From IMG/VR virus record IMGVR_UViG_3300031787_007614, positions 1 through 64,000 of that record: DNA of 64,000 bases; one strand, given 5' to 3'. Shown here piece by piece: positions 1,670-43,679 of the stretch. The stretch's first letter is position 1, and every line of letters starts with the position of its first letter. Position numbers and translations under genes: made by a program. Below the pieces are notes generated by a model that saw nothing but the letters and a program-made list of their open reading frames with translations, was not told the origin of the DNA and did not search any database.

Positions 1670-2560
1670 TTAGAACTGTACGACCAACCCGCCTGCTACT
1701 TGTTTGACATCAGTGGCTGCTGAGGTTCCCTCAACTGTACGATACAAAACTTGTGCATAGGTCTTTTTGCTGAAAGCATACTCAGCACCTACGTTGTAAC
1801 TCTTGATGCCATTTTCAATGCGACCATAGCTGGCCTTCACTGTGACTGGTCCACCAAGTTTGTGTGCCACGCCGACCAACTGAGCACGGTTGGTGTTGGC
1901 AGCAACGCCTTTGTTGTCGCTTGCGCTGGCAAACACAGTGGTTGCACCAAATTTAGCACGAGCAGCCAACACGTCACTGGTTTCTGCGCCAGCTTCGTAA
2001 CGAGCATAAGTCAACACAGCAGGTCCAACTGCGGCAATCACGGATGCGGCATAAGGATCAGCGGCAGTGCCAACAGCACCAGTGCTACGATCAAAGTTAG
2101 CAGAGACATTGCCAAAGTTCACAGAAGTGAAAGCGGCATTGCTCAAACGCAAACCACGCAGGTTATGCACGTCGGCAGCTGAGCTACCAATCAATGTGCC
2201 AAATGGATCATTGTCGCTGATGGCCAAGAAGTGAGTGTGAACATTGCGACCAAGATCAACGCTACCCATTTTGTGAGCAATACCCACGGTGCTTTGGCGA
2301 TCGCCAAGTCTAGTGTCAGTACCAGTGTCTGGGCTGTTGGCTTGGATGCCGGTCTCGTATGTGGCACGAGCTGTTAATCCGCCACCTAAGTTTTCAGTAG
2401 CACGAATGCCAAAGTGACTCAAGTCATTGGCCATGCCTTGCACGGTGGAAGCACCAGTTTTGGTGTTGTCAAGGTAAGTGCCAACACGACCATAGATACC
2501 AACTTGTGCGCTTGCAACACCAGCAACTGCCAGGGTCAACGCAATTAGAACTTTCTTCAT
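1670..2560 (-). CDS. Gram-negative general porin (Betaproteobacteria-type)
   Basis: Signal peptide, N-terminal V.IYGRV, S.FGIR..E.LGGGL, Y.FSKKT, C-terminal Phe. Confidence 0.9.
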   Translation of the reverse strand: MKKVLIALTLAVAGVASAQVGIYGRVGTYLDNTKTGASTVQGMANDLSHFGIRATENLGGGLTARATYETGIQANSPDTGTDTRLGDRQSTVGIAHKMGSVDLGRNVHTHFLAISDNDPFGTLIGSSAADVHNLRGLRLSNAAFTSVNFGNVSANFDRSTGAVGTAADPYAASVIAAVGPAVLTYARYEAGAETSDVLAARAKFGATTVFASASDNKGVAANTNRAQLVGVAHKLGGPVTVKASYGRIENGIKSYNVGAEYAFSKKTYAQVLYRTVEGTSAATDVKQVAGGLVVQF

Positions 2561-2608: not shown

Positions 2609-2638
2609 ATTATATAGCACAAACACTGAGAATGTCAA
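2609..2638 (-). promoter_or_regulatory. sigma70 promoter of porin
   Basis: TTGACA with downstream TATAAT-like box. Confidence 0.6.
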
Positions 2639-2640
2639 AG

Positions 2641-2666
2641 AAAATGGCTACTTTCGCAGCCATTTT
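2641..2666 (-). terminator. Terminator after tmRNA
   Basis: AAAATGGCT-GCGAAAGT-AGCCATTTT. Confidence 0.75.
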
Positions 2667-2826
2667 GGTGGTTTCTGTTACGAGGTATTTCCTACCCTAG
2701 ACGACCTTAAGCGGCCATCAAGAATTTTTCATCATTTGCAGATAAAAGTTTTGCTTGATTTACGGTCATCGCCTACCGTGCTGTCCACTCTGTTACTCTT
2801 TGCCCTGTCGAATCTAGGTCAGGCCC
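2666..2826 (-). ncRNA. ssrA: tmRNA, two-piece: piece with 5' acceptor strand and tag ORF ANDEKFLMAA* (2707-2739)
   Basis: Starts GGGCCTGA-CCTAGATTCGAC; tag reading frame ends in AA-stop. Confidence 0.92.
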
Positions 2827-2839
2827 ATCATAAAGAAAC

Positions 2840-2917
2840 TTAATCTACGCTTAATGTTGTTAACAACAAGCATAATATTGGAAAAACAATTAATAAAAAT
2901 TTTGCTAAATTTTCCAT
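2840..2917 (-). CDS. 25-aa hydrophobic micropeptide in tmRNA intervening segment
   Basis: MENLAKFLLIVFPILCLLLTTLSVD*; start is 1 nt after the upstream micro-ORF stop. Confidence 0.45.
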   Translation of the reverse strand: MENLAKFLLIVFPILCLLLTTLSVD

Positions 2918-2918
2918 A

Positions 2919-3029
2919 TTACCATAACTCACAGTTTTTTATTTTCTCTTCGTCCAATGTGGTATCACGTGTAAAATAAAATACACCAAACACTAACCAA
3001 AATAACAAAAATAAAACATAACCTATCAT
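2919..3029 (-). CDS. 36-aa single-TM micropeptide in tmRNA intervening segment
   Basis: MIGYVLFLLFWLVFGVFYFTRDTTLDEEKIKNCELW*; RBS AAGGAAG just upstream. Confidence 0.55.
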   Translation of the reverse strand: MIGYVLFLLFWLVFGVFYFTRDTTLDEEKIKNCELW

Positions 3030-3041
3030 TAAACTTCCTTA

Positions 3042-3108
3042 TGGTGGACCTGGGGGGATTCGCACCCCCGTCCAGAACACTTTTCTCTCGGCTTCATACA
3101 GCAATAAC
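3042..3108 (-). ncRNA. ssrA: tmRNA, two-piece: piece with T-arm and ACCA end (transcribed first)
   Basis: GGAC-GGGGG-TGCGAAT-CCCCC-CAGGTCC-ACCA; pairs with GGGCCTG giving the G3-U70 Ala identity. Confidence 0.92.
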
Positions 3109-3112
3109 TCGC

Positions 3113-3141
3113 AGTATATATTTATTCTTTGGGCTTGTCAA
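3113..3141 (-). promoter_or_regulatory. sigma70 promoter of tmRNA
   Basis: TTGACA-17-TATACT. Confidence 0.8.
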
Positions 3142-3283
3142 CTGCTTTGGAGATGATGTCATACACTTGTGCGTATGCATCAGTAATTTTGTCTAGTTGT
3201 TGTTCCGACACCAAGTCTGTGTCCTCCAGACTGACCAAGTCTCGGGCTAGATTTTCTTGTAGTTTTTTTATGGGATTGAGCAC
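3122..3283 (-). CDS. Hypothetical protein, 53 aa (GTG start)
   Basis: Manual translation VLNPIKKLQENLARDL...; ATAAATA motif upstream. Confidence 0.5.
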   Translation of the reverse strand: MLNPIKKLQENLARDLVSLEDTDLVSEQQLDKITDAYAQVYDIISKAVDKPKE

Positions 3284-3291
3284 ATACCTAT

Positions 3292-3825
3292 TTATTCATC
3301 CCCGCTATCTACTGGGATCCAGCCCAACTTAAAAAAGTCTTCCTGGATTTCTTCTGTGACATGTCCTTCGGGTACATATCTTTTAACACCGTCAGCATCA
3401 CCATTGCCCAGTCCATCGCCTATGCCCGAACAGTACCAATCAATATAGTCACCTTGTTCACGCATGTCGGCAACAATACCCCCGGCATAGCGCCACGAAC
3501 AACTGTAGGTCTCTCCCTTTAGCAAAGGCCATACTTCGTTGCGTTGCCAGTCTTGATTGCACAAGGCTGCGTAGATGTTTTGAGCGTAGGTATCGCTGGC
3601 CTTGGCTTTGTCGCAAACCCACTTGGTGCTACGCAAATCATATTCAAGATTGTTTTCTCGCCACCGTTCGTCGGCTTCGCGTTGAGCCTGATGTTCGTTG
3701 ATCATGCGTTCAAGATCTAAAGCTCGTTGAACATCTTCGTCAGTGGCAGGATCTCCTCCTTCCGCAATGACATCTTCAATTCTGCATTGACTGTGAAAGG
3801 TTCCGCGAGTAGGACTTTTGTTCAT
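3292..3825 (-). CDS. Hypothetical phage protein
   Basis: Start moved to MNKSP to avoid overlap with tRNA-Leu. Confidence 0.75.
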   Translation of the reverse strand: MNKSPTRGTFHSQCRIEDVIAEGGDPATDEDVQRALDLERMINEHQAQREADERWRENNLEYDLRSTKWVCDKAKASDTYAQNIYAALCNQDWQRNEVWPLLKGETYSCSWRYAGGIVADMREQGDYIDWYCSGIGDGLGNGDADGVKRYVPEGHVTEEIQEDFFKLGWIPVDSGDE

Positions 3826-3831
3826 AATGTT

Positions 3832-3917
3832 TGGTACCAGAGACGGGACTCGAACCCGTATGCCCTTGCAAGCGGCAGATTTTAAGTCTGCTGTGTATAC
3901 CATTCCACCACTCTGGC
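3832..3917 (-). tRNA. tRNA-Leu(TAA)
   Basis: Long variable arm, anticodon loop CT-TAA-AA, ACCA. Confidence 0.95.
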
Positions 3918-4098: not shown

Positions 4099-4127
4099 AT
4101 TGTAGCAGGAAAACTATTTAGTGTCAA
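4099..4127 (-). promoter_or_regulatory. sigma70 promoter for the tRNA trio
   Basis: TTGACA-17-TACAAT with extended TG. Confidence 0.75.
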
Positions 4128-4548: not shown

Positions 4549-5313
4549 TCAACGGTCTTTGTCAGTTCTTACCAATTGAATTAAGCGGTATCCAGGATCA
4601 AATTCCCACCATTTTTTGCCAAACTGTGGATCTGCGGCAGCGGCGTGATGATTGTTGTGCCAGCCCTCTCCACCAGTCAAATATCCTACCAGCAGGTTAT
4701 TTGAACTTTGATCACGTGTGTCAAAATTTCTATATCCTGATGGACTGTGAGTGAGAGAGTTGGTCAGTGAACTGGCATGTTGCAACAATAGTGACGGAAC
4801 CAAATAAGCATACACTACTGCATAAGGATCTATCATGTAAACTGCCACCCCGACCAAGATAGTGTACAACCAATGATTGTAGTACATGTGCATGTGAAAT
4901 TTGGATTTCACAATCTCTGGAGCATAACTTAATTTTGGAGTAGCAGGTGTGAGTCTAAATTGCACGGCTAGATAACCGTATACCGCAGGTGAGTGCGGAT
5001 CATCTTTTGTGTCAGAGTGTCTATGATGCGCTCGATGTATTGCTACCCAATACAACATTGGTAAAGTTGTGCCAGGAATAGCAATCAATGTTCCTAGATA
5101 TTCAAACCATTTTGGTGCTTGAAAAGAACGATGGGTGATCAGCCGATGAACTGTTACAGTTCCGACTACCATCTTGATATAGTAGACCAACAGACATATT
5201 GCCCACTGCCATGCTTCACTGTTGAAGATAAAGTAGACCAGGATCACATGTAGACAGGCACTGTATGCAATCATTTCGTTGTGCGAAGGCACAAACCAGT
5301 TTTTCTTTTTCAT
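4549..5313 (-). CDS. Membrane fatty-acid (delta-9-type) desaturase
   Basis: Three His boxes HRLITH, HRAHH, WHNNHH; TM segments; WWEFD. Confidence 0.92.
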   Translation of the reverse strand: MKKKNWFVPSHNEMIAYSACLHVILVYFIFNSEAWQWAICLLVYYIKMVVGTVTVHRLITHRSFQAPKWFEYLGTLIAIPGTTLPMLYWVAIHRAHHRHSDTKDDPHSPAVYGYLAVQFRLTPATPKLSYAPEIVKSKFHMHMYYNHWLYTILVGVAVYMIDPYAVVYAYLVPSLLLQHASSLTNSLTHSPSGYRNFDTRDQSSNNLLVGYLTGGEGWHNNHHAAAADPQFGKKWWEFDPGYRLIQLVRTDKDR

Positions 5314-5480: not shown

Positions 5481-5773
5481 AGCCTGGAATCATAAGTGAA
5501 GGCAGCAAGATATCGCATGCTGGCACGGCTGGGAATGTGCTGATTACAGAACCGTTGGTATGCCGCACGCCAACGCTTTTGGACAGGTGCTGGCGCATGG
5601 CAAGCAAGATAATGCAAGTGGCCAAATCTGCGCCCAATGCTGATGTGATTGGGCTTCCAGCCTGCAGGATACCATTTGTCGCGAGTTTGCCAATTGTAGT
5701 TTACCCAGACACCCATTCGGCGTTCTTGCATGATATACTTTTTAGATATATCTTGTGGTCTAAATCGGTTCAT
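5477..5773 (-). CDS. Hypothetical protein
   Basis: ATGA overlaps with neighbours. Confidence 0.6.
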   Translation of the reverse strand: MNRFRPQDISKKYIMQERRMGVWVNYNWQTRDKWYPAGWKPNHISIGRRFGHLHYLACHAPAPVQKRWRAAYQRFCNQHIPSRASMRYLAAFTYDSRL

Positions 5774-6564
5774 TTTTGCATCATCAGCGCATTGAAGTTT
5801 GCAGGAACAACAATTGTTTGCACACGACCGTTCTTGATACCTTCTGAGATATTCATCATAGCCTGCGCTTGCATGTAAGCAATTGACTGAGCACCTTGAT
5901 TACTCAATGCTTGCATACGTTCTGCTTCCATCTTAGCAGTCTTAACTTCAACTTCTTTTTGTTTCAATTCATTCTTGGCACGAACCAACTCATTTGCACT
6001 CGCAACCACAGAATCTGCAGGTACAATATTCCGAATCAACACTTGACCAACAACCAAACTACCATCAAGTTTTTCATCAGCCAAACTCTTTTGAATTTGT
6101 TCTTTAATTGCTTGTTCCATCACTTGGCGATTATCAGCCATGTCTAGTGCCTCGTACTTTCGGGCTTCTTTGTAGATGGCATTACGAGTGGTTTGAACCA
6201 TATAGTTGTACATCAAGTAGATGTCGCCGTTGTGCCGAGCATGGAATGCTTGACTCTTTTGGCTATACAACTCGGCTACCTGTGCTTGATTGATGTTATA
6301 GATAACCACTGCATCAAAGTCTTTCATTGTTGAGTTATCTTTAGCAACAGGTGTCATGTCCTCCAGTTTGACATTAACGTCCTTGATTGGGAATGTAAGA
6401 ACATCACCCCAAAAGGTTTGATTAAACGAGCCAGGCATTAATTCACCTTGCTGGACTTGTTTATCAAAGCCAACACGTACACCAACTTCACCTGTTTCGA
6501 TACGAGTACAACCTGTTGCCAGCACAGCCGCGGCAAGAACGGAGAGAGTCAAAATACGTTTCAT
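5770..6564 (-). CDS. SPFH/band-7 (prohibitin-like) lipoprotein
   Basis: Lipobox LATGC, IETGEVGV, C-terminal coiled coil. Confidence 0.88.
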   Translation of the reverse strand: MKRILTLSVLAAAVLATGCTRIETGEVGVRVGFDKQVQQGELMPGSFNQTFWGDVLTFPIKDVNVKLEDMTPVAKDNSTMKDFDAVVIYNINQAQVAELYSQKSQAFHARHNGDIYLMYNYMVQTTRNAIYKEARKYEALDMADNRQVMEQAIKEQIQKSLADEKLDGSLVVGQVLIRNIVPADSVVASANELVRAKNELKQKEVEVKTAKMEAERMQALSNQGAQSIAYMQAQAMMNISEGIKNGRVQTIVVPANFNALMMQK

Positions 6565-10372: not shown

Positions 10373-11446
10373 ATGGACACTGATCTTTACCACGACATTT
10401 ACACTAGCGAAATTTTTGACACCAGCCAATGCATATGGCACGAAAATAATACCATGAATTTCTTTCACAGTTTGTTGATCAAACTGGGATATGAGCCTGT
10501 GCAAGATGGACACAAAACATGGCGCCGTGGAGACCGTACTGTGGTGCTGTGTCTGGTAGACGACTACATCTCTACCACATACGACTATGACACACCAGTG
10601 GCATATCGATTTGATCGCAATACCACAGTGATCACAGACAACTATGTTACCAGTCCAACCTTGTACAAGGTGTTTCAACTGCCATCCAGTTTCTTTGGCA
10701 TCTATCATTATGAACCCAAGCTGACCAATTTCAATCCCACACGCAGATTTAATTTTTCAGTCAATCGCATTGATTCCAAACGCATGTTGACCATGCTGGA
10801 AATTGCGTTGCGTTGTGAAAAGTATCCAGATGCTGAAACGTTGGACTTTATCAATTTCAACTGCTGGAGTTGGGAAGGTGACAATTCCACAGCTGAAGGA
10901 TGCAATCAAAATTTCAGAGATGCCTACGAAAAACTAGAGCCACAATACAAAGCAGTGTATGGTGACACTTTTGAACGCATTGCTCAAACCATGCCATTTA
11001 AAAATCATGACATGTCAGTTGAGCAGGCACACCTCAGTGCTTATGTGAACATGGTAATTGAAACCTACTCCAGTGACAGTTCAATTGCTCTCAGCGAGAA
11101 GATATTCCGTGCATTGGTCACTCCGGCACCCTGGCAAGTGTATGCTGGCCGCCATGCAGTGGCCTATCTGGAAAGTCTAGGATTTGACACACTCAAAGAC
11201 ATTGTCAATCACAGTTACGATGTCATGATGGAAAACAAAACTGCTGCCTATGGTGACAAACTGGTTGAATACATCTTTGCTGGCGCAGATACATTTACCA
11301 AACTCAGTGCTATGGATCGCACAGAACTGCGACATCGTTGCCTTACTGCCAGCAGACAAAATCAAAAGGTGCTCAAAGACATGAGTGCTCGTTGGCCTGC
11401 AGAGTTTGCCGCTTGGTTGCCGGCTGTTATAGACCATATCAAATAA
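10373..11446 (+). CDS. Putative glycosyltransferase, GT10-like paralog 1
   Basis: IET....LSEK..RAL...P.......L..LGF...D..NHSYD motif; TATAAGTA at 10360-10367. Confidence 0.6.
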   Translation: MDTDLYHDIYTSEIFDTSQCIWHENNTMNFFHSLLIKLGYEPVQDGHKTWRRGDRTVVLCLVDDYISTTYDYDTPVAYRFDRNTTVITDNYVTSPTLYKVFQLPSSFFGIYHYEPKLTNFNPTRRFNFSVNRIDSKRMLTMLEIALRCEKYPDAETLDFINFNCWSWEGDNSTAEGCNQNFRDAYEKLEPQYKAVYGDTFERIAQTMPFKNHDMSVEQAHLSAYVNMVIETYSSDSSIALSEKIFRALVTPAPWQVYAGRHAVAYLESLGFDTLKDIVNHSYDVMMENKTAAYGDKLVEYIFAGADTFTKLSAMDRTELRHRCLTASRQNQKVLKDMSARWPAEFAAWLPAVIDHIK

Positions 11447-11447
11447 C

Positions 11448-12989
11448 ATGTGTGGTGTTCTATACGTAAAAAGCACCACTGATATACCGCTAGAAAAGCA
11501 CAACCAAGCTCTAGAAATTTTAAAAGATCGCGGTCCAGATTTTACCTGTTACCAACATCATGGTCGTGTGTTCTGTGCGCAAACAGTTCTGCACATCACT
11601 GGCAACACACAATTTTACAATCGACAGTCAGATGATTTTTTTGCATTCAATGGCGAAATCTACAACTATCGCTGGTTTGGTTCCTACAGCAACGACACTG
11701 AGCTGATGTATCGTGCTGTAAAAGACGCACCAGTAAAAAAACTCAAATACTTTGAAGGACCGTGGGCGTGGGTGTATGCTCAAGGCGACCAAGTGATATA
11801 TGCCACTGATCCACAAGGCGAAAGATGCCTGTACAGATATCAAGACAACAACATACTGATTGTGAGTTCTGAGGTGGCAGCTATTTTGGTATACATCCGA
11901 CCAAAATTACAAGACATTGATTACACAACCAAACACTATCCAATTTGGCAAAACACGCCTTGGCAAGGAATTGAACGATGTGTGCCAGGTGTGATGTATG
12001 ATCAGTCGGGCAACACCACAGTGATTGACAGTATCTTTTCATGGGCCAAACCCAGTAGTATTCAAACATTGGACCAGGCCTGGGAAGAATATCAACCCTT
12101 GTGGGAACGGGTAATCACTGACATGCGGCCAGAAACATCTTATGCCTGCACATTCAGTGGTGGGCTTGATTCTGGCGTGGTTGCAAAAAGTCTTCCACAA
12201 AGTCAGCACTATTATACCACCAACATGCTGGGCAAAGACCCAGTGAGTGAACAATCTCAACGTATGTTGGAAGGCAGTCAACGAGACAAAATCATCAACA
12301 TTGGTGTTACAGAACAGCAATGGGCCGATGCATTTGAGCAAGTGTGTCGTCGCACACTGATGCCAGTTCAAAGCTACAGTTTTGTTGGCCAGTGGATAAT
12401 TGCTCAACACTGCAAAGAACGTGTGTTGTTTACTGGTGTAGGCGCTGATGAACTGTTTGGTGGCTATGGCGTTTACTCACAGCTTGAATACACCACACAA
12501 ACAAGTGCAAGTCCTTACAGTTCATTTGGCAATGACACTCACGCTCAACAACTGTGGCAACAATGTTTGCATGCACATCAAGGTCAAGCAGAGCCAGCCA
12601 CTCTGTTGATGGATTATATCACTCAAATTTGTGCAATAGACATGCGTGGCATTGACGTTTGTACCATGGCACATGGCATTGAACCACGCTCGCCATTTGT
12701 GCATCCTAAGATCATTCGGTTTGCACTTGGCCTTCCCATGCACCTGAGGCGCGGCAAACCTTTGATTCGTCGACAGTTTTTGGCCTCCTGGCCTGAAGAA
12801 ATGATACTTCCCAAAAAAGGATTCACTGGACATTGCAATGATTCATTGCCTTGGATGAAATTCACTGTGCCAGATCAGGCTCGGGCACCACAGTGGAAGC
12901 AAATTGTCAAAACTGGATTTAGATATTATGCCAATCAATATCTTGATCAAACCACTCAGGACTTATCCGCACATGCGGATGTTGCTTGA
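11448..12989 (+). CDS. asnB: Asparagine synthetase-like glutamine amidotransferase
   Basis: MCG N-terminus, RGPD, NGEIYN, SGGLDS, G.GADELFGGY, E.RSPF. Confidence 0.9.
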   Translation: MCGVLYVKSTTDIPLEKHNQALEILKDRGPDFTCYQHHGRVFCAQTVLHITGNTQFYNRQSDDFFAFNGEIYNYRWFGSYSNDTELMYRAVKDAPVKKLKYFEGPWAWVYAQGDQVIYATDPQGERCLYRYQDNNILIVSSEVAAILVYIRPKLQDIDYTTKHYPIWQNTPWQGIERCVPGVMYDQSGNTTVIDSIFSWAKPSSIQTLDQAWEEYQPLWERVITDMRPETSYACTFSGGLDSGVVAKSLPQSQHYYTTNMLGKDPVSEQSQRMLEGSQRDKIINIGVTEQQWADAFEQVCRRTLMPVQSYSFVGQWIIAQHCKERVLFTGVGADELFGGYGVYSQLEYTTQTSASPYSSFGNDTHAQQLWQQCLHAHQGQAEPATLLMDYITQICAIDMRGIDVCTMAHGIEPRSPFVHPKIIRFALGLPMHLRRGKPLIRRQFLASWPEEMILPKKGFTGHCNDSLPWMKFTVPDQARAPQWKQIVKTGFRYYANQYLDQTTQDLSAHADVA

Positions 12990-21240: not shown

Positions 21241-23223
21241 TTAGGCTGCTAGTTTTGCCCTGGCGCCAGCATCTCCGCGTTTGGCAACGTCTACCTGCGT
21301 GTCAGCGTTCAAGCATTCAACTGTGGCTTTTCCAAAATTTCTACGTCTAGCAAAATAAAATAGTTCTAAGAAACGTGGAAAGCTCATAGTTTTATCTTCT
21401 GGAAACTCCAGTTGATATTCTCTTGGCGCATGTACAAGTTTGTGATCAAAGCTGAGATATTCCCAGATGTTGTAGTCTAATTCTAAAACCTCAGGATAAG
21501 TGTTCATAGCATCGTAAGCCACATGGTATCTGCGTTGGAATCGCATGATGTTCTCCAACAACACAGGCGGTAAATCATAACGACTCATGAACTTTTCTAA
21601 CATGTCAAAGATATTGTGATTTTGTTTTTCCACATGCATGTTCAACACAGTTCTGTGTATGAGGTTCCATCCGTGAATTTCAATGCCAATCTTGGGATGA
21701 TTGATTCGGCCATTGGTCATCCAACTGCGATAGTACTCGCGAACTTCTTCTTGTTCGCGGTGGATCCATTCATGACCTTGCACGTATTCAAACAGGTCTG
21801 CATAAAACTCGCTGTAGGGCACACCCTGATACTTGAACACCAATCGACTCAACAGTGTGCTGATGCCATTGATGTGGAAGGTATTGATAAACCATGAAAA
21901 AATATGTGCTTCCATCATGACATCAAACGGCATGTCTTTGGTGCCAGTGATAATGTCAATGGCTTCTTCAATGTGTTCGTTGGAGTATGATCCAGAAAAA
22001 TAGTCTGTTACACTTTGATTGGTAATCTTAAACAACTTCTTCTGCAACAGGTTCATTTCGGCATTTTCCAACAACTGAGCCTGGAACACCGTGAGACCAG
22101 TATGATTGCCCATTTCAAACAAAGTCCAAAAGTTTTTCTTCCAAGACTCAAGACTTTCACCAGGTAGGCCCAAGATAAGTTCAGTGTAGGTTGGAATGTT
22201 ACGTTGCTCACACAGCTCAAATACTTCGTTGAGCTTGTTCATTTCCATGTTTTTGCGACGAATGTTTTCCAATACATCCAAGTCAAGACTTTGCACACTC
22301 AGCGTTAGACCTTGATTGAAGCCTCGGGCATCCAGCAATTTTTTAACAATGTCCACAACTTCTTTCTTTTGATTCTTGGCCCAGGCCACAGAGAAAGTTC
22401 TCGGAGAACCATACTTTTCTTGACATTCAATAATCTTGTCTGCAATCAAACTGTCACGTTCGGCAAACATGCCAAAGTTAGCGTCAGTAATTGATATGAA
22501 ATCAAAGTTGTGCTTAGCCATCCATTCCAACTCATGGTACACACGTTCTAAACCAAACTTCTTGACCTTGTTGTATGTCAAGCTACCCCAGTCACAAAAC
22601 GTACAAGCAAATGGGCAACCACGAGAAGTTTCTAGTGTGCCTTGCCACATGATGTCAGGATTTGCAGCCATTAGGTCATCAAATACACCTGCCAGATACG
22701 GGCTAGGAATATCTTCAAGAGTTTCAATGCGCTTGGCATCACCTGTGCTTATAGCTTCGCCGTCTCGATTGATCAGCAAGCCAGGTATTGACTCCCAGTC
22801 TTTGCTGTCATATGCCAGCATGAGATTTCTAAATGTGATTTCACCTTCGTAGCAAATCACAATGTCCATGAATGGTTCTTTGCGAAACAGATCTTTGTCT
22901 GTGATTGCAGGTTCGGGACCGCCAAATATGGTCAACACGCCAGGATTGATCTCCTTGAGCCTGCGAGCCAATGCATAGTTGAAATTGTGATTCCACACAT
23001 AAGTGCTAAAAGTCACAACATCATTTTCAGCCAGTCGTTGTGCAATTGGCTCTATGTTGTCCCGGCGCCACACCCATTCAGTCACTTGCCATGCATCACG
23101 TATGCTGGGTTCCGCAACTGCATAACTCCAAATCACACCTGCTGAGTATGGCAGGTAGTAGGCATTGAGTTCTTTAGGACCTTGTTGGAAGTTTGGTTGT
23201 ACCCAGGCAATTTTTCTTTTCAT
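21241..23223 (-). CDS. B12-binding radical SAM enzyme
   Basis: STYVWN/GGP cobalamin domain, ETSRGCPFACTFC, DANFG, ILGLPGE. Confidence 0.92.
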   Translation of the reverse strand: MKRKIAWVQPNFQQGPKELNAYYLPYSAGVIWSYAVAEPSIRDAWQVTEWVWRRDNIEPIAQRLAENDVVTFSTYVWNHNFNYALARRLKEINPGVLTIFGGPEPAITDKDLFRKEPFMDIVICYEGEITFRNLMLAYDSKDWESIPGLLINRDGEAISTGDAKRIETLEDIPSPYLAGVFDDLMAANPDIMWQGTLETSRGCPFACTFCDWGSLTYNKVKKFGLERVYHELEWMAKHNFDFISITDANFGMFAERDSLIADKIIECQEKYGSPRTFSVAWAKNQKKEVVDIVKKLLDARGFNQGLTLSVQSLDLDVLENIRRKNMEMNKLNEVFELCEQRNIPTYTELILGLPGESLESWKKNFWTLFEMGNHTGLTVFQAQLLENAEMNLLQKKLFKITNQSVTDYFSGSYSNEHIEEAIDIITGTKDMPFDVMMEAHIFSWFINTFHINGISTLLSRLVFKYQGVPYSEFYADLFEYVQGHEWIHREQEEVREYYRSWMTNGRINHPKIGIEIHGWNLIHRTVLNMHVEKQNHNIFDMLEKFMSRYDLPPVLLENIMRFQRRYHVAYDAMNTYPEVLELDYNIWEYLSFDHKLVHAPREYQLEFPEDKTMSFPRFLELFYFARRRNFGKATVECLNADTQVDVAKRGDAGARAKLAA

Positions 23224-40077: not shown

Positions 40078-41022
40078 TTATTTAGAATTTGCAACTATTC
40101 TGGCTAATGTTTGTCCGCCTCTAAGCGAATCTATTTCTCCAGGTTTTTGGAACTCAAACCATGCAACGTCAGCAGGGCCATTGTGACGATGCATGAGCTC
40201 AAATCCCAATGTTTCAGCATGTTCTTGAATCAACGATCCTGGAGTGTAGCACATGTAACTGCGCTCGGCCAATGCAACTCCGTGAGCACGATCACAGTCG
40301 TTGTAGGTAAAAAACACCACTCCGCCAGGCCGAAGTTTTTTCCACAGCTCATCCAAGTACTGACATATCAATTCCAATGGTTTGTAATTGAAGTAATTGT
40401 AAGCAAAGCAATATCCAAACTGAGCATCTGGCAACAGTGCAAGTATTGGTTTGCCTAGAATCTCTTCAGCTGTGTATAATCTCAGTCTACGTCGATATTC
40501 TTCAGTAAATCCTTGACAGGCAGGTTCTAGCAATTCAAGATTGTTGTCAATCATGTACAACGGGTCCAATGGTACCAATTGCTCCACGTGTTGTTCCAGT
40601 GCTGGTCTGAAAATCAATCCAGGCACACGCCAATCTGTGTAGCGTAAAATTCTACCTTGTAGTAGTTCAGCACTTTCGGGATCGCAACGTAGCCTACGAT
40701 TAAGAATGTGTTCGGTAGTGTCATAACACATTTCATGCTGGAACAATCTCAAACTTTCACGCAAGTATTCTGGATGCTGTGCAGTCATAGCGTCAATCAC
40801 GTGACTGCGTATAGCGTCAATGGTATGATTGAATTGCTGGAAACTTTCATTAATTTTGTTACCATTGGCAATGATGCCTTGTGTAAATTTGTTAAATTGC
40901 ACATTGTGGTTGGCAATTTTGTGTATCACAGCATCAAGTCTGTGACGGGCTTCTTGATGAATTTGACCTAACTCAAATTCATCAATGTGGTTCAAGTAAT
41001 CAACAAGTTCGCTCAGTTTCAT
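40078..41022 (-). CDS. Protein with C-terminal SAM methyltransferase-like domain
   Basis: LP..QF, L...LRPGG...FT. Confidence 0.6.
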   Translation of the reverse strand: MKLSELVDYLNHIDEFELGQIHQEARHRLDAVIHKIANHNVQFNKFTQGIIANGNKINESFQQFNHTIDAIRSHVIDAMTAQHPEYLRESLRLFQHEMCYDTTEHILNRRLRCDPESAELLQGRILRYTDWRVPGLIFRPALEQHVEQLVPLDPLYMIDNNLELLEPACQGFTEEYRRRLRLYTAEEILGKPILALLPDAQFGYCFAYNYFNYKPLELICQYLDELWKKLRPGGVVFFTYNDCDRAHGVALAERSYMCYTPGSLIQEHAETLGFELMHRHNGPADVAWFEFQKPGEIDSLRGGQTLARIVANSK

Positions 41023-43679
41023 TCGAATGAAAATAGTGATGTAAAAGTATTTTCTGTGTTGGTAGCAGACGCAAGGTCCCATTCCAACACACCCAGCAAG
41101 TTGTCGACCTTTTGATCCACAACAGTTGCTTCCATTAGCCCATCGTCAAACGGCAGTTCAGTAAACCATGCAGGCAATCTTTGCTCATCTGTAGGATAGC
41201 CAATTGATGTCCATCCAAGTGCATTTGATTTGAGTTTGCACACAATGGTTTTCATACCATCCACAACCTGCATTGAGTAGTTGTCTGAATTCATTCTACG
41301 CATTTGATTCCAATTCATTGCGGCACGAACGTGTCCTGGCATGTTTGCTTTGCCCAGGCGTGCTTCCTCTGCCGCATATTTGGTCAAGTTGTTCACACGC
41401 TTAGGCGATCCTTTTTCCCAGCCTGGACGCTCTTTAAACTCATACTTGAATTCTCTAATGCGTTCAATGATCTCATCTCGTTGTGTACCTGCCAGTACTT
41501 TATTTAGAATTTCTAACAGGAAGTCTTGAATTACTTTGGGGGTATCTGAACGCTTGAGATCCAAGCCCATGGCCTTGGTCTTGCCAATCTTGCCGTCTAC
41601 ATCCAGTCGCTTGCCTTCCAAGTCAATGATGTTCACAGCATAACGCTTCTTGGTAATGAACAAACTGCGGTCAGCAACCAGTTCACGACCTGCTTTGATC
41701 AACGCACCCATGTCTCGGGGACAATGGAACGCCTGTTCCATAAACGCTGGAAAGCTCTCATTCACTTGATCAGCAATTGAGTCGTACAGTTGGATGCAGA
41801 TTTCTTTTGACCATTCCATCCGTCCTTCTGCAACTTCTTTTTCCAGTATGGGCCACGCAGAAAAATAGCATGAGTCTGTATCACCATAGATGATGGCCTT
41901 GCCTGTGTGATCATATTCGCCTGTGATGCACTCATTGATGTGAGCATCCATGTGCTTGGCAATACTTCGACCTGCCAGTGTGGTTGACTGCCCAATACGC
42001 TTGTCAAAGAATCTACAGCCTGGATTCAAAATAGCACCATACAAGCTATTCAAGTTAATCTTCTTGACCAATTGACGTTTGTCCCAGAACGCAATCTCTT
42101 TGGGATCCTTGGTCTGCTTCTTCTTGGCTTGCAGTTCTTGTCGTTCACGATACCAGCGTTCCAGCAGGCCAGGGATGATACCTTTCTTCTCGTAAGTGAG
42201 AATGGTACCATTGGCAGTAAGGATCCAAGGTTGATTTGAGTCAAAGATCATGTGCCAGATTTCCATAGCAGAGTGTACTGACTCTTCGCCACCTTCCCAG
42301 TCAATGGTAATTTCTGTACCACGTTGCTGTTCCATCACAGCAGTATACTCTAAACTGGCAAACAAGCCTTCCCATGCAGCCGCAAAACTTTGTCCCTTGG
42401 CCATGTTGGATTTGATCAACTGATCAGTCATGGTTTGCCGCAATTGGCCCACCACAGTTTCTGGACCCATGTTCATGGCACGAATTGCAGATGGATATAG
42501 ACTGTTGATGTCCACTGACCCAATCCACATGTGCAGGCCCTTTTTAGGATATGCCACATAAGCACCTGCGGCCTGGGTGTCATCATCTGTAAGGCGTTGC
42601 TTACGATTGGGCACAACCATTCCACGCTCGTGTGCTTCATTGATAATGGCCTGTTCAGTCACTGCCACAGCACCCATTGTGGTTTGTAGCAACACAGTAT
42701 TGGCGTGTGCCAGTTCATTGGCTAGGTCCAAGAAACGCAATTTCTTGTCTAACTTGGCAATGATCATGGTGTCTTGGCGGTTGTACTCAATAAACTTTTT
42801 GAAGTGCTGGTTGTACAACTGATCCAGTGTGCCTTCAAATTGTGTTTTGCGTTCACCCAGCTCGTACTCGCCGATAGCATCCAAACTATATGAGTGGCGT
42901 TCCTCGTATGTGTACTTGCGATACAACTGCATGTAGTCCATATGCACACGACCGACTAAGTCGTAAGTTTGATTCTCTGCGCCAAAGCGTTCAAACATTC
43001 TTTGCTTGGGAAACTGTCCCCACAAACAAAAGCGTCGTGTGTCATCCTTGCTGAGTATTCTTGTGGTACGATTTACTGTGTAAGGAATGTCGTAACCTTC
43101 TGAGTTCCAACCTGTAAGTACATCCGCACCTTCAATCACATCCAAGAACATTTTGATCATGTCTTCTTCACGCTCAAACAAGATGGTATTTTCAAACTCG
43201 GCCACCAGCTCTTGTGCAGTATCCCAGCTTAGATGTTTAGGCGGCACCGCCAGTGTGATCATCTGATCCAGCCAATCTAAATATACAGATATAGCAGTGA
43301 TAGGATTGAAGGGATCTGCCACAGGCGAGAATCCACGCTCTGCATCAAACGCAACTTCGATGTCAAAAAATGCTGTGTGCAGTTCTGGAGCATCTTGGTC
43401 TTTGTAGTTCTCTTCCAAACATCTAAAGATAGGATTGATGTCTGATTCATACAACTGCTTGCCCGACTGGCTGCGAACTTCCTTGCGAAATTCTTTGTTG
43501 TTGCGCGATGAGAATCTATTTACAGGTGTGCCGTAGATGCTTTGAAACTTGCCTCTAGGATCGTCATAATAGAAAATGTAGTTGGCAGGATATTCCTTGT
43601 AGACTCGTTCGCCATCGCGGCGTTCTACTACATGTATGCGATCGTGTTCACGATCAAAAAGTGCGTCGATATAACTCAT
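41019..43679 (-). CDS. DNA polymerase family B
   Basis: DIE exonuclease, DINSLYPS, K...NS.YG, YGDTDS, KKRY. Confidence 0.97.
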   Translation of the reverse strand: MSYIDALFDREHDRIHVVERRDGERVYKEYPANYIFYYDDPRGKFQSIYGTPVNRFSSRNNKEFRKEVRSQSGKQLYESDINPIFRCLEENYKDQDAPELHTAFFDIEVAFDAERGFSPVADPFNPITAISVYLDWLDQMITLAVPPKHLSWDTAQELVAEFENTILFEREEDMIKMFLDVIEGADVLTGWNSEGYDIPYTVNRTTRILSKDDTRRFCLWGQFPKQRMFERFGAENQTYDLVGRVHMDYMQLYRKYTYEERHSYSLDAIGEYELGERKTQFEGTLDQLYNQHFKKFIEYNRQDTMIIAKLDKKLRFLDLANELAHANTVLLQTTMGAVAVTEQAIINEAHERGMVVPNRKQRLTDDDTQAAGAYVAYPKKGLHMWIGSVDINSLYPSAIRAMNMGPETVVGQLRQTMTDQLIKSNMAKGQSFAAAWEGLFASLEYTAVMEQQRGTEITIDWEGGEESVHSAMEIWHMIFDSNQPWILTANGTILTYEKKGIIPGLLERWYRERQELQAKKKQTKDPKEIAFWDKRQLVKKINLNSLYGAILNPGCRFFDKRIGQSTTLAGRSIAKHMDAHINECITGEYDHTGKAIIYGDTDSCYFSAWPILEKEVAEGRMEWSKEICIQLYDSIADQVNESFPAFMEQAFHCPRDMGALIKAGRELVADRSLFITKKRYAVNIIDLEGKRLDVDGKIGKTKAMGLDLKRSDTPKVIQDFLLEILNKVLAGTQRDEIIERIREFKYEFKERPGWEKGSPKRVNNLTKYAAEEARLGKANMPGHVRAAMNWNQMRRMNSDNYSMQVVDGMKTIVCKLKSNALGWTSIGYPTDEQRLPAWFTELPFDDGLMEATVVDQKVDNLLGVLEWDLASATNTENTFTSLFSFE

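Follow-up and report, generated by a model that had tools for sequence, protein, structure and literature searches.

Permuted tmRNA genes, which give rise to a two-piece ribosome-rescue RNA, are described for Alpha- and Betaproteobacteria and cyanobacteria, and for phages such as Melnitz (Rfam RF01849, RF01850, RF04321; PMC11915505; PMC9004378). In these genes an acceptor piece is followed by an intervening sequence and a coding piece, the CCA is encoded, the acceptor stem forms between the two pieces with a G3-U pair, a proteolysis-tag ORF is present, and the spacer is absent from the mature RNA. The spacer, about 24 nt in the Rfam consensus, has been treated as discarded RNA, and the 2025 database paper, with 11,946 permuted tmRNAs in its database, reports only a tRNA-Ala gene and a repetitive element inside such spacers. 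On the other hand, an intervening sequence of the 23S rRNA gene of Coxiella burnetii (IVS/S23p; PMC4990558) is an excised, stem-closed spacer within a stable-RNA gene that contains an ORF and does not accumulate as RNA; this ORF lacks a functional RBS, is reported as decaying, and appears not to be made in vivo. Group I introns with homing-endonuclease genes occur in the tmRNA T-loop (PMC11915505). In hok/sok-type type I toxin mRNAs, the SD of a small hydrophobic peptide ORF is sequestered by pairing of the 5′ and 3′ ends of the transcript. In tRNA-punctuated transcripts, such as those of mitochondria or of the phage T4 tRNA cluster with its interspersed small ORFs, mRNA segments are delimited by tRNA-type processing sites.

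Here we analyze a permuted tmRNA gene in a 64,000-nt stretch of DNA (positions 1 to 64,000 of IMG/VR record IMGVR_UViG_3300031787_007614; referred to as the window). An earlier note, made from the sequence alone, claimed that the AT-rich spacer of this gene holds coupled hydrophobic ORFs of 36 and 25 aa, and that its ends pair over 14 bp including G-U in a stem which sequesters the RBS of the first ORF. This observation is correct. The note further inferred that the spacer acts as a cargo slot, a mini-mRNA whose translation could depend on tmRNA maturation; our data support this interpretation in part, strongly as regards the cargo slot, whereas the dependence on maturation is not shown and is probably stated the wrong way round.

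The permuted tmRNA locus and its intervening segment

The window belongs to a large T4-type myovirus, the family-B DNA polymerase of which matches phrog_262 and is 51% identical to that of Sinorhizobium jumbo phage Phosso. A DNA search with the tmRNA and with 25 kb of the window against 50,697 phage records returned no match, and the clade is uncultured. An identical stretch lies on IMG/VR contigs of 138–364 kb from freshwater samples. ARAGORN and Rfam (tmRNA_permuted, RF04321, 115 bits, full length) place a permuted tmRNA on the minus strand, with the intervening segment exactly where the earlier note had put it.

Features of the locus (coordinates in the window)
Feature	Position	Strand	Remarks
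53-aa ORF upstream of the tmRNA	3122..3283	−	Homologue is slot cargo in loci L113 and L087
Sigma-70-type promoter of the tmRNA unit	3113..3141	−	TTGACA-17-TATACT, 11/12; ends about 10 nt before the RNA start
tmRNA acceptor piece	3042..3103	−	3′ half of the tRNA-like domain, T-arm, encoded CCA; ends ...GGUCCACCA at 3042
Intervening segment (cargo slot)	2827..3041	−	215 nt, 25% GC
5′ arm of the closing stem	3028..3041	−	Contains the SD (AAGGAAG) and the first two bases of the ORF1 AUG
ORF1	2919..3029	−	36 aa; N-terminal TM helix, conserved RD-x3-D-x-EK tail
ORF2	2840..2917	−	25 aa, hydrophobic; starts 1 nt after the ORF1 stop (TAA-T-ATG); its stop codon forms the loop-side end of the 3′ arm
3′ arm of the closing stem (anti-SD)	2831..2844	−
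tmRNA coding piece	2664..2826	−	Starts GGGCCUG at 2826
Tag ORF	2739..2707	−	ANDEKFLMAA*
Hairpin plus T-run ending the tmRNA unit	2633..2666	−	Hairpin with T-run at 2666..2641
Family-B DNA polymerase	41019-43679	−	phrog_262

The acceptor strand GGGCCUG pairs with CAGGUCC, which gives the G3-U pair, and the T-loop reads UGCGAAU rather than the usual UUCGAnU. The ends of the intervening segment pair 14/14 in register (U3041-A2831 to U3028-A2844, with three G-U pairs), and the helix continues through A3042-U2830 and C3043-G2829 and, after a single C3044/A2828 mismatch, into the acceptor stem. This stem is present in both the MFE and the centroid structures, and the precursor context has z=-5.1. 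The resulting helix of 7+1+16 bp would in principle be long enough for RNase III. In 5000 dinucleotide shuffles of the segment, end pairing averaged 6.5/14 with a maximum of 13 and never reached 14, and the observed tandem ATG-ORF coverage of 0.88 compares with a mean of 0.15 (P=0.0012). The longest single ORF alone is not significant (p=0.14).

Related intervening segments and their cargo

A 28-nt stretch covering the T-arm and the acceptor 3′ strand is identical in at least 120 IMG/VR contigs, most of which carry a permuted tmRNA; tag frames are intact, with tags such as ANDSQFALAA in relatives. Relatives with the same tRNA-like domain score 88–150 bits against the betaproteobacterial two-piece model (RF01850; gathering score 84), while, as regards the subtype, the window itself was reported only under alpha_tmRNA at 57 bits, the long spacer probably depressing its score against the beta model. 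The loci are syntenic, with a 203-aa ORF upstream (42–75% identical) and a porin downstream (43–58% identical), i.e. a diverged clade with a near-frozen tRNA-like domain. The 28-mer occurs in only 2 of 185,579 bacterial species genomes, in both cases on MAG contigs of ~20 kb that look like phage and carry the same kind of locus; the domain therefore looks phage-specific, and a bacterial origin could not be traced.

From these contigs we extracted 83 distinct intervening segments of 25–491 nt (these and other loci are designated by L numbers below), a comparison of spacers that the earlier note had proposed as a test. All have the closing stem in one register: on average 10.6 of 12 positions pair, against 7.4±0.15 with permuted partners and 4.9–7.1 in slid registers, and several positions show four to six pair types. 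The segments fall into two classes. The non-coding class (n=45) has a median length of 69 nt, a loop GC of 0.44, and arms such as UAAGCAUA or UAAACAUA. The coding class (n=38) has a median length of 135 nt and a loop GC of 0.34, and its 5′ arm reads UAAGGA/GAGG, followed 4–8 nt later by ATG. An SD-like arm and a slot-filling ORF co-occur (33/36 vs 5/47, Fisher p=2e-14), and the stem is kept by compensatory change within the coding class as well (10.4/12 vs 8.2±0.2). [quoted passage not shown] A sense ORF covers at least 70% of the segment in 28 of 51 long segments, against 1 of 51 on the antisense strand, and every segment of 284 nt or more exceeds all 300 shuffles. No tRNA gene was found in the 83 segments, and no other Rfam family was found inside the long non-coding spacers.

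The cargo is diverse, with at least 20 unrelated families counted by eye among the coding segments, including TM micro-peptides and a helical 52-aa protein. The cargo of L080 is a GNAT domain and that of L095 a CxxCxxCC domain, both above Pfam cut-offs, and homologous cargo pairs give in-frame dN/dS values of 0.06–0.14, against about 1 or more out of frame. The cargo is also modular. L058 holds an ORF1 homologue plus a second ORF that occurs alone in L022 and L031, and L154, which has a different T-arm, holds three ORFs. Window-type cargo is joined to another coding-piece type in L121 and L150, and the related L058-type cargo (ORF1 homologue plus L022-type partner) lies in a tmRNA with a different T-arm in L151. 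The same cargo occurs with different T-arms in L151 and L154. The 53-aa ORF immediately upstream of the tmRNA in the window is 53% and 49% identical to the slot cargo of L113 and L087, respectively, and L149 shows a decayed acceptor 3′ end in front of an ORF1-type cargo, with another acceptor end downstream. Genes therefore move into and out of the slot.

Comparison of ORF1 with its homologue in L058 shows that 25 of 105 nt differ while only 8 residues change (dN/dS 0.08, against 1.2 and 2.3 in the other frames), and comparison with L150 gives a dN/dS of 0.12. A full HMMER scan of 1.84 billion representatives found about a dozen relatives of 35–45 aa at 50–72% identity; across the 12 representatives of this family eight residues are invariant (F7 F10 V13 F14 Y18 R21 D22 D26). 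The distant members are not in tmRNA genes. In L138/L140/L141 and L146/L147 they are followed, through an overlapping ATGGTAA, by a 30-aa TM peptide which by eye, without an alignment, resembles the L058/L022 partner. ORF2 has a 72%-identical homologue at the same position in L150/L153; across 11 substitutions pS is 0.33 and pN 0.105, which gives a dN/dS of 0.26 against 1.5 out of frame. This is suggestive but rests on small numbers and a single diverged homologue, and near-identical copies add three non-synonymous changes and one synonymous change. Most hits to a degenerate DNA pattern for ORF2 were chance hydrophobic strings outside tmRNA genes. Searches of Pfam, PHROGs and a protein atlas gave no function for ORF1 or ORF2. 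We conclude that ORF1 is a real gene, that ORF2 is probably its small membrane partner, and that the pair is a captured module, conserved in related phage-like contigs. The earlier note had named as a refutation that the ORFs are not conserved and that their hydrophobicity reflects T-richness alone; this does not apply to ORF1 and is only weakly tested for ORF2.

The marine phage Melnitz, which has an alpha-type two-piece tmRNA (PMC9004378), points to a second lineage. Its 142-nt spacer has the same closing-stem design, and inside the stem GGAG-N6-ATG opens a 54-codon frame that is not annotated in GenBank. We considered that its glutamine riboswitch might sit in the spacer, but it lies downstream of the tmRNA. 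The Melnitz-type domain occurs in 95 marine viral contigs with 22 distinct spacers of 50–166 nt. All spacers of 100 nt or more carry an SD-preceded ORF of 37–62 aa, length variants differ by multiples of three, in-frame dN/dS is 0.20–0.41, and most frames run 42 nt into the coding piece. Coding spacers therefore exist in two independent phage tmRNA lineages.

Transcription, predicted folding and interpretation

The tmRNA unit has its own promoter and terminator. The scan flagged the terminal hairpin on the plus strand only; the minus-strand terminator (same stem followed by TTTTCTTTG) is our own reading of the sequence. A separate perfect promoter then serves the porin gene. In part of the family the same position (−10 hexamer end at −71 from the CCA end) carries a match of at least 10/12, and 29 of 95 distinct upstream regions have such a match somewhere; only about 30% of family members show a strong sigma-70-like promoter at the conserved position. 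No sense-strand promoter lies in the segment, and only 2 of 49 long segments in the family have one. The ORFs can therefore only be transcribed as part of pre-tmRNA.

Partition-function folding predicts SD unpaired probabilities of 0.66–0.69 for nascent transcripts that lack the 3′ arm, 0.02 for the complete precursor, and 0.03 for the excised segment; across 33 coding-type relatives the values are 0.75 without and 0.08 with the 3′ arm. Coding-type stems are weaker than non-coding ones (−8.0 vs −11.1 kcal/mol). Excision alone would therefore not unmask the RBS, and translation and the maturation-competent fold look mutually exclusive rather than sequential. In contigs from four freshwater metatranscriptomes the two mature pieces reach a word-depth of about 100–230 and the spacer of the window is at 0, with loose ends running into other spacers. 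This is compatible with a stable two-piece RNA and a short-lived spacer, although assembled contigs from mixed relatives prove neither processing nor absence.

Based on this dataset, we hypothesize that the intervening segment is a gene-cargo slot and that the pre-tmRNA is a bifunctional transcript, to which we assign a probability of roughly 0.6. The anatomy, the conservation and covariation of the stem, the association of SD-type arms with slot-filling ORFs, the diversity and modular exchange of cargo, the purifying selection on cargo proteins, and the single transcription unit follow from the sequence comparisons themselves. What we infer goes further. Translation of the ORFs, and likewise the processing sites and the alanylation, SmpB binding and trans-translation activity of the RNA, are inferred from sequence alone. 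In this view, ribosomes would load co-transcriptionally while the 3′ arm has not yet been made, and ORF2, which has no SD of its own, would be translated by termination-reinitiation. Once the 3′ arm is transcribed and cleared of ribosomes, the stem would close, shutting off re-initiation and creating the extended acceptor helix that RNase P and 3′-end processing need to release the two tmRNA pieces. The excised, still-closed spacer would then be degraded, the result being a short burst of micro-protein per tmRNA transcript, and cargo would be exchanged between phages by recombination through the near-invariant tmRNA flanks. However, the co-transcriptional window is a thermodynamic prediction, and a −9 kcal/mol stem rich in A-U and G-U pairs may simply be opened by ribosomes, in which case there is no gating.

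It is possible, if less likely, that the cargo genes are real but the coupling is incidental. In this case small accessory genes were inserted between the two pieces, the stem exists only for tmRNA processing, and the SD sits in it because the slot is compact and the ancestral arm (UAAG...) needs only two changes to become UAAGGA, with ribosomes opening the weak stem freely and no gating in either direction. The stem exists equally in non-coding segments, non-coding arms already begin UAAG/UAAA, TAAGGA-N6-ATG is also the ordinary gene junction in these phages (the L058 junction and the L140 upstream region), coding stems are weak, and cargo families are functionally unrelated to each other. 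However, predicted SD occlusion is nearly complete once the 3′ arm exists, stops are positioned exactly at the arm boundaries, and several ORFs run into the mature coding piece, so that translation and RNase P cleavage must interfere physically.

A more far-reaching version of the main hypothesis, which we consider unlikely on present evidence, is a translation-gated precursor. Ribosome traffic on the cargo ORF would hold the closing and acceptor helix open and so delay tmRNA maturation, and helix closure would in turn end cargo translation. In members whose ORF runs into the coding piece (L003, L009, L096, L117 and most marine Melnitz-type genes), RNase P cleavage would convert the cargo mRNA into a non-stop message that would itself be a substrate of the tmRNA being released. 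The phage would thereby tie its supply of ribosome-rescue RNA, and the fate of the cargo peptide, to the translational state of the infected cell, and the slot would also act as a recombination-ready cassette site shared across phage lineages. If true, this would be of high interest.

A hok-like type I toxin module, in which membrane toxins are silenced by fold-back pairing until processing or 3′ trimming of the spacer opens the SD, i.e. the maturation-dependent version of the earlier note, appears very unlikely. Small hydrophobic peptides are common cargo, 5′-3′ pairing sequesters the SD, as in such modules, and the nearest Pfam-named atlas cluster is the GhoT/OrtT toxin family, though at a chance-level score of 0.64. 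However, the excised segment keeps the stem, and much cargo is not hydrophobic (GNAT, Cys-rich, and the helical 52-aa protein). ORF1 homologues outside tmRNA genes lack such pairing contexts. No antisense promoter or antitoxin RNA is evident, as the only plus-strand match within the segment is a weak 9/12 and Rfam gave no hit there, although this is weak negative evidence. That the ORFs are untranslated chance products of a T-rich spacer is very unlikely: the segment is 43% T, all three frames give hydrophobic strings, the longest single ORF is unremarkable, and the antisense strand also has a 41-aa ORF, but this reading is contradicted for ORF1 by its conserved family and dN/dS, and is opposed by the tandem-ORF coverage, the family-wide SD/ORF association and the Pfam domains of some cargo. 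Finally, a dead tmRNA relic split by gene insertion, for which only the decayed acceptor end in L149 speaks, showing that decay does occur, is least likely of all, since both pieces are intact and score fully in Rfam, the 28-mer is invariant across a clade whose flanking proteins are only 42–75% identical, the stem is kept by compensatory change in coding-type members, the tag frames are intact, and the mature pieces are abundant in RNA contigs.

Protein genes under selection in the spacers of two independent phage lineages add a new class of nested gene. Annotation pipelines skip such genes because CDSs inside RNA genes are suppressed, and the Melnitz record has none. The locus also provides a natural example of an mRNA whose boundaries are the processing sites of a single tRNA-like domain, and a hyper-variable accessory-gene hotspot bounded by near-invariant sequence. 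It makes the interplay between translation and stable-RNA maturation directly testable, since its geometry (SD in the 5′ arm, stop in the 3′ arm) is simple to mutate with compensatory controls and a cultured system with a coding spacer exists (Melnitz on OM43 strain H5P1).

Comparison with known systems

Compared to described permuted tmRNA genes, with which it shares gene order, encoded CCA, G3-U acceptor stem and tag ORF, the spacer in the window is 215 nt long (up to 491 nt in relatives) and carries SD-preceded protein genes. We found no report of ORFs in such spacers, as far as the searchable literature goes, which mentions 79 phage tmRNAs and, within permuted-tmRNA spacers, a tRNA gene and a repetitive element. 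The nearest precedent is the ORF of the Coxiella 23S rRNA intervening sequence. In contrast to that ORF, those described here have SDs, are under purifying selection, and are diverse and exchanged; excision in Coxiella is by RNase III, while here it is presumably by RNase P plus 3′-end processing. With hok/sok-type mRNAs the locus shares a small hydrophobic peptide ORF with a sequestered SD, but no antisense antitoxin is evident, the cargo is not restricted to hydrophobic peptides, and the pairing belongs to a tRNA-like processing helix. As in tRNA-punctuated transcripts, the mRNA segment is delimited by tRNA-type processing sites (RNase P at its 3′ boundary), yet both boundaries are halves of one and the same tRNA-like domain, so that releasing the mRNA and assembling the functional RNA are the same event. 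Group I introns in the tmRNA T-loop likewise nest a protein gene in a tmRNA gene and are removed from the mature RNA. Here, no intron family was found in Rfam and no endonuclease in Pfam and PHROG scans of the cargo, the position is different (between CCA and G1), and removal leaves two RNA pieces rather than a spliced one.

Exchange of small genes with the tmRNA slot

The helical 53-aa ORF just upstream of the tmRNA in the window is homologous to the gene that occupies the tmRNA slot in two related phage contigs, L113 (53% identity) and L087 (49% identity), and it lies further upstream in the related contigs L055, L064 and L086. This small gene changes position relative to the acceptor piece. 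In L149 (IMGVR_UViG_3300031857_014260) an apparent remnant of an acceptor-piece 3′ end (CTAGGTCCGTTG instead of CCAGGTCCACCA) sits directly before a cargo of the ORF1 type (the family of the window's 36-aa micro-protein) and its partner, and a further ...GGTCCACCA end lies about 100 nt downstream, which looks like a rearrangement that expelled cargo from a tmRNA gene. In L144 and L145, where the context is not a tmRNA gene, an ORF1 homologue lies next to a small protein which, judged by eye only, resembles the GNAT-like slot cargo of the related contig L080. The slot seems to draw on a shared pool of small accessory genes.

The ORF-less spacers, for example those of the relatives L102, L012, L013 and L019 (55–174 nt), have a higher GC content (0.44) and visible internal hairpins, but display no Rfam or tRNA match. 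One metatranscriptome contig (run X15) skips 201 nt of the window's spacer; it most likely comes from a relative with a different or short spacer rather than from a spliced form of this one.

Genes and promoters around the tmRNA

The phage carries host-like accessory genes: a Gram-negative porin, a fatty-acid desaturase, a Band 7/SPFH protein, an asparagine synthase and a B12-binding radical SAM enzyme. Perfect or near-perfect sigma-70 consensus promoters precede the porin gene and the tRNA cluster, which suggests early units transcribed by the host RNA polymerase. The 203-aa ORF, as listed mechanically, overlaps the tRNA-Leu gene by about 70 nt at its 5′ end, so that its real start is probably further downstream. 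The protein is conserved upstream of the tmRNA across the clade and has no family match.

Positions of features in the window and in phage Melnitz
Sequence	Position	Strand	Feature
Window	1670-2560, 4549-5313, 5770-6564, 11448-12989, 21241-23223		Gram-negative porin, fatty-acid desaturase, Band 7/SPFH protein, asparagine synthase, B12-binding radical SAM enzyme
Window	2609-2638	-	sigma-70 promoter before the porin gene (12/12)
Window	2834/3036		junction in one metatranscriptome contig
Window	3059-3075	-	T-loop of the tmRNA
Window	3122-3283	-	53-aa ORF
Window	3292-3903	-	203-aa ORF
Window	3832-3917	-	tRNA-Leu
Window	4099-4127	-	sigma-70 promoter before the tRNA cluster (11/12)
Melnitz (MZ577097)	about 11078-11261		54-codon frame in the tmRNA spacer

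Spacer frames entering the coding piece, and the T-loop

In the freshwater relatives L003/L084, L009/L024/L027, L096 and L117 the slot ORF reads 13–39 nt into the mature coding piece, so translation and RNase P cleavage would compete on the same nucleotides. The cultured OM43 phage Melnitz has an unannotated, SD-preceded frame in its tmRNA spacer which reads 42 nt into the coding piece and is conserved, with in-frame indels, in marine relatives. If RNase P cuts first, the message would lack a stop codon.

The 28-mer that contains the T-loop of the freshwater family is found in only 2 of 185,579 bacterial species genomes, both times on MAG contigs that look like phage. In the window and in all of the related contigs L001–L120, this T-loop reads UGCGAAU rather than the usual UUCGAnU.
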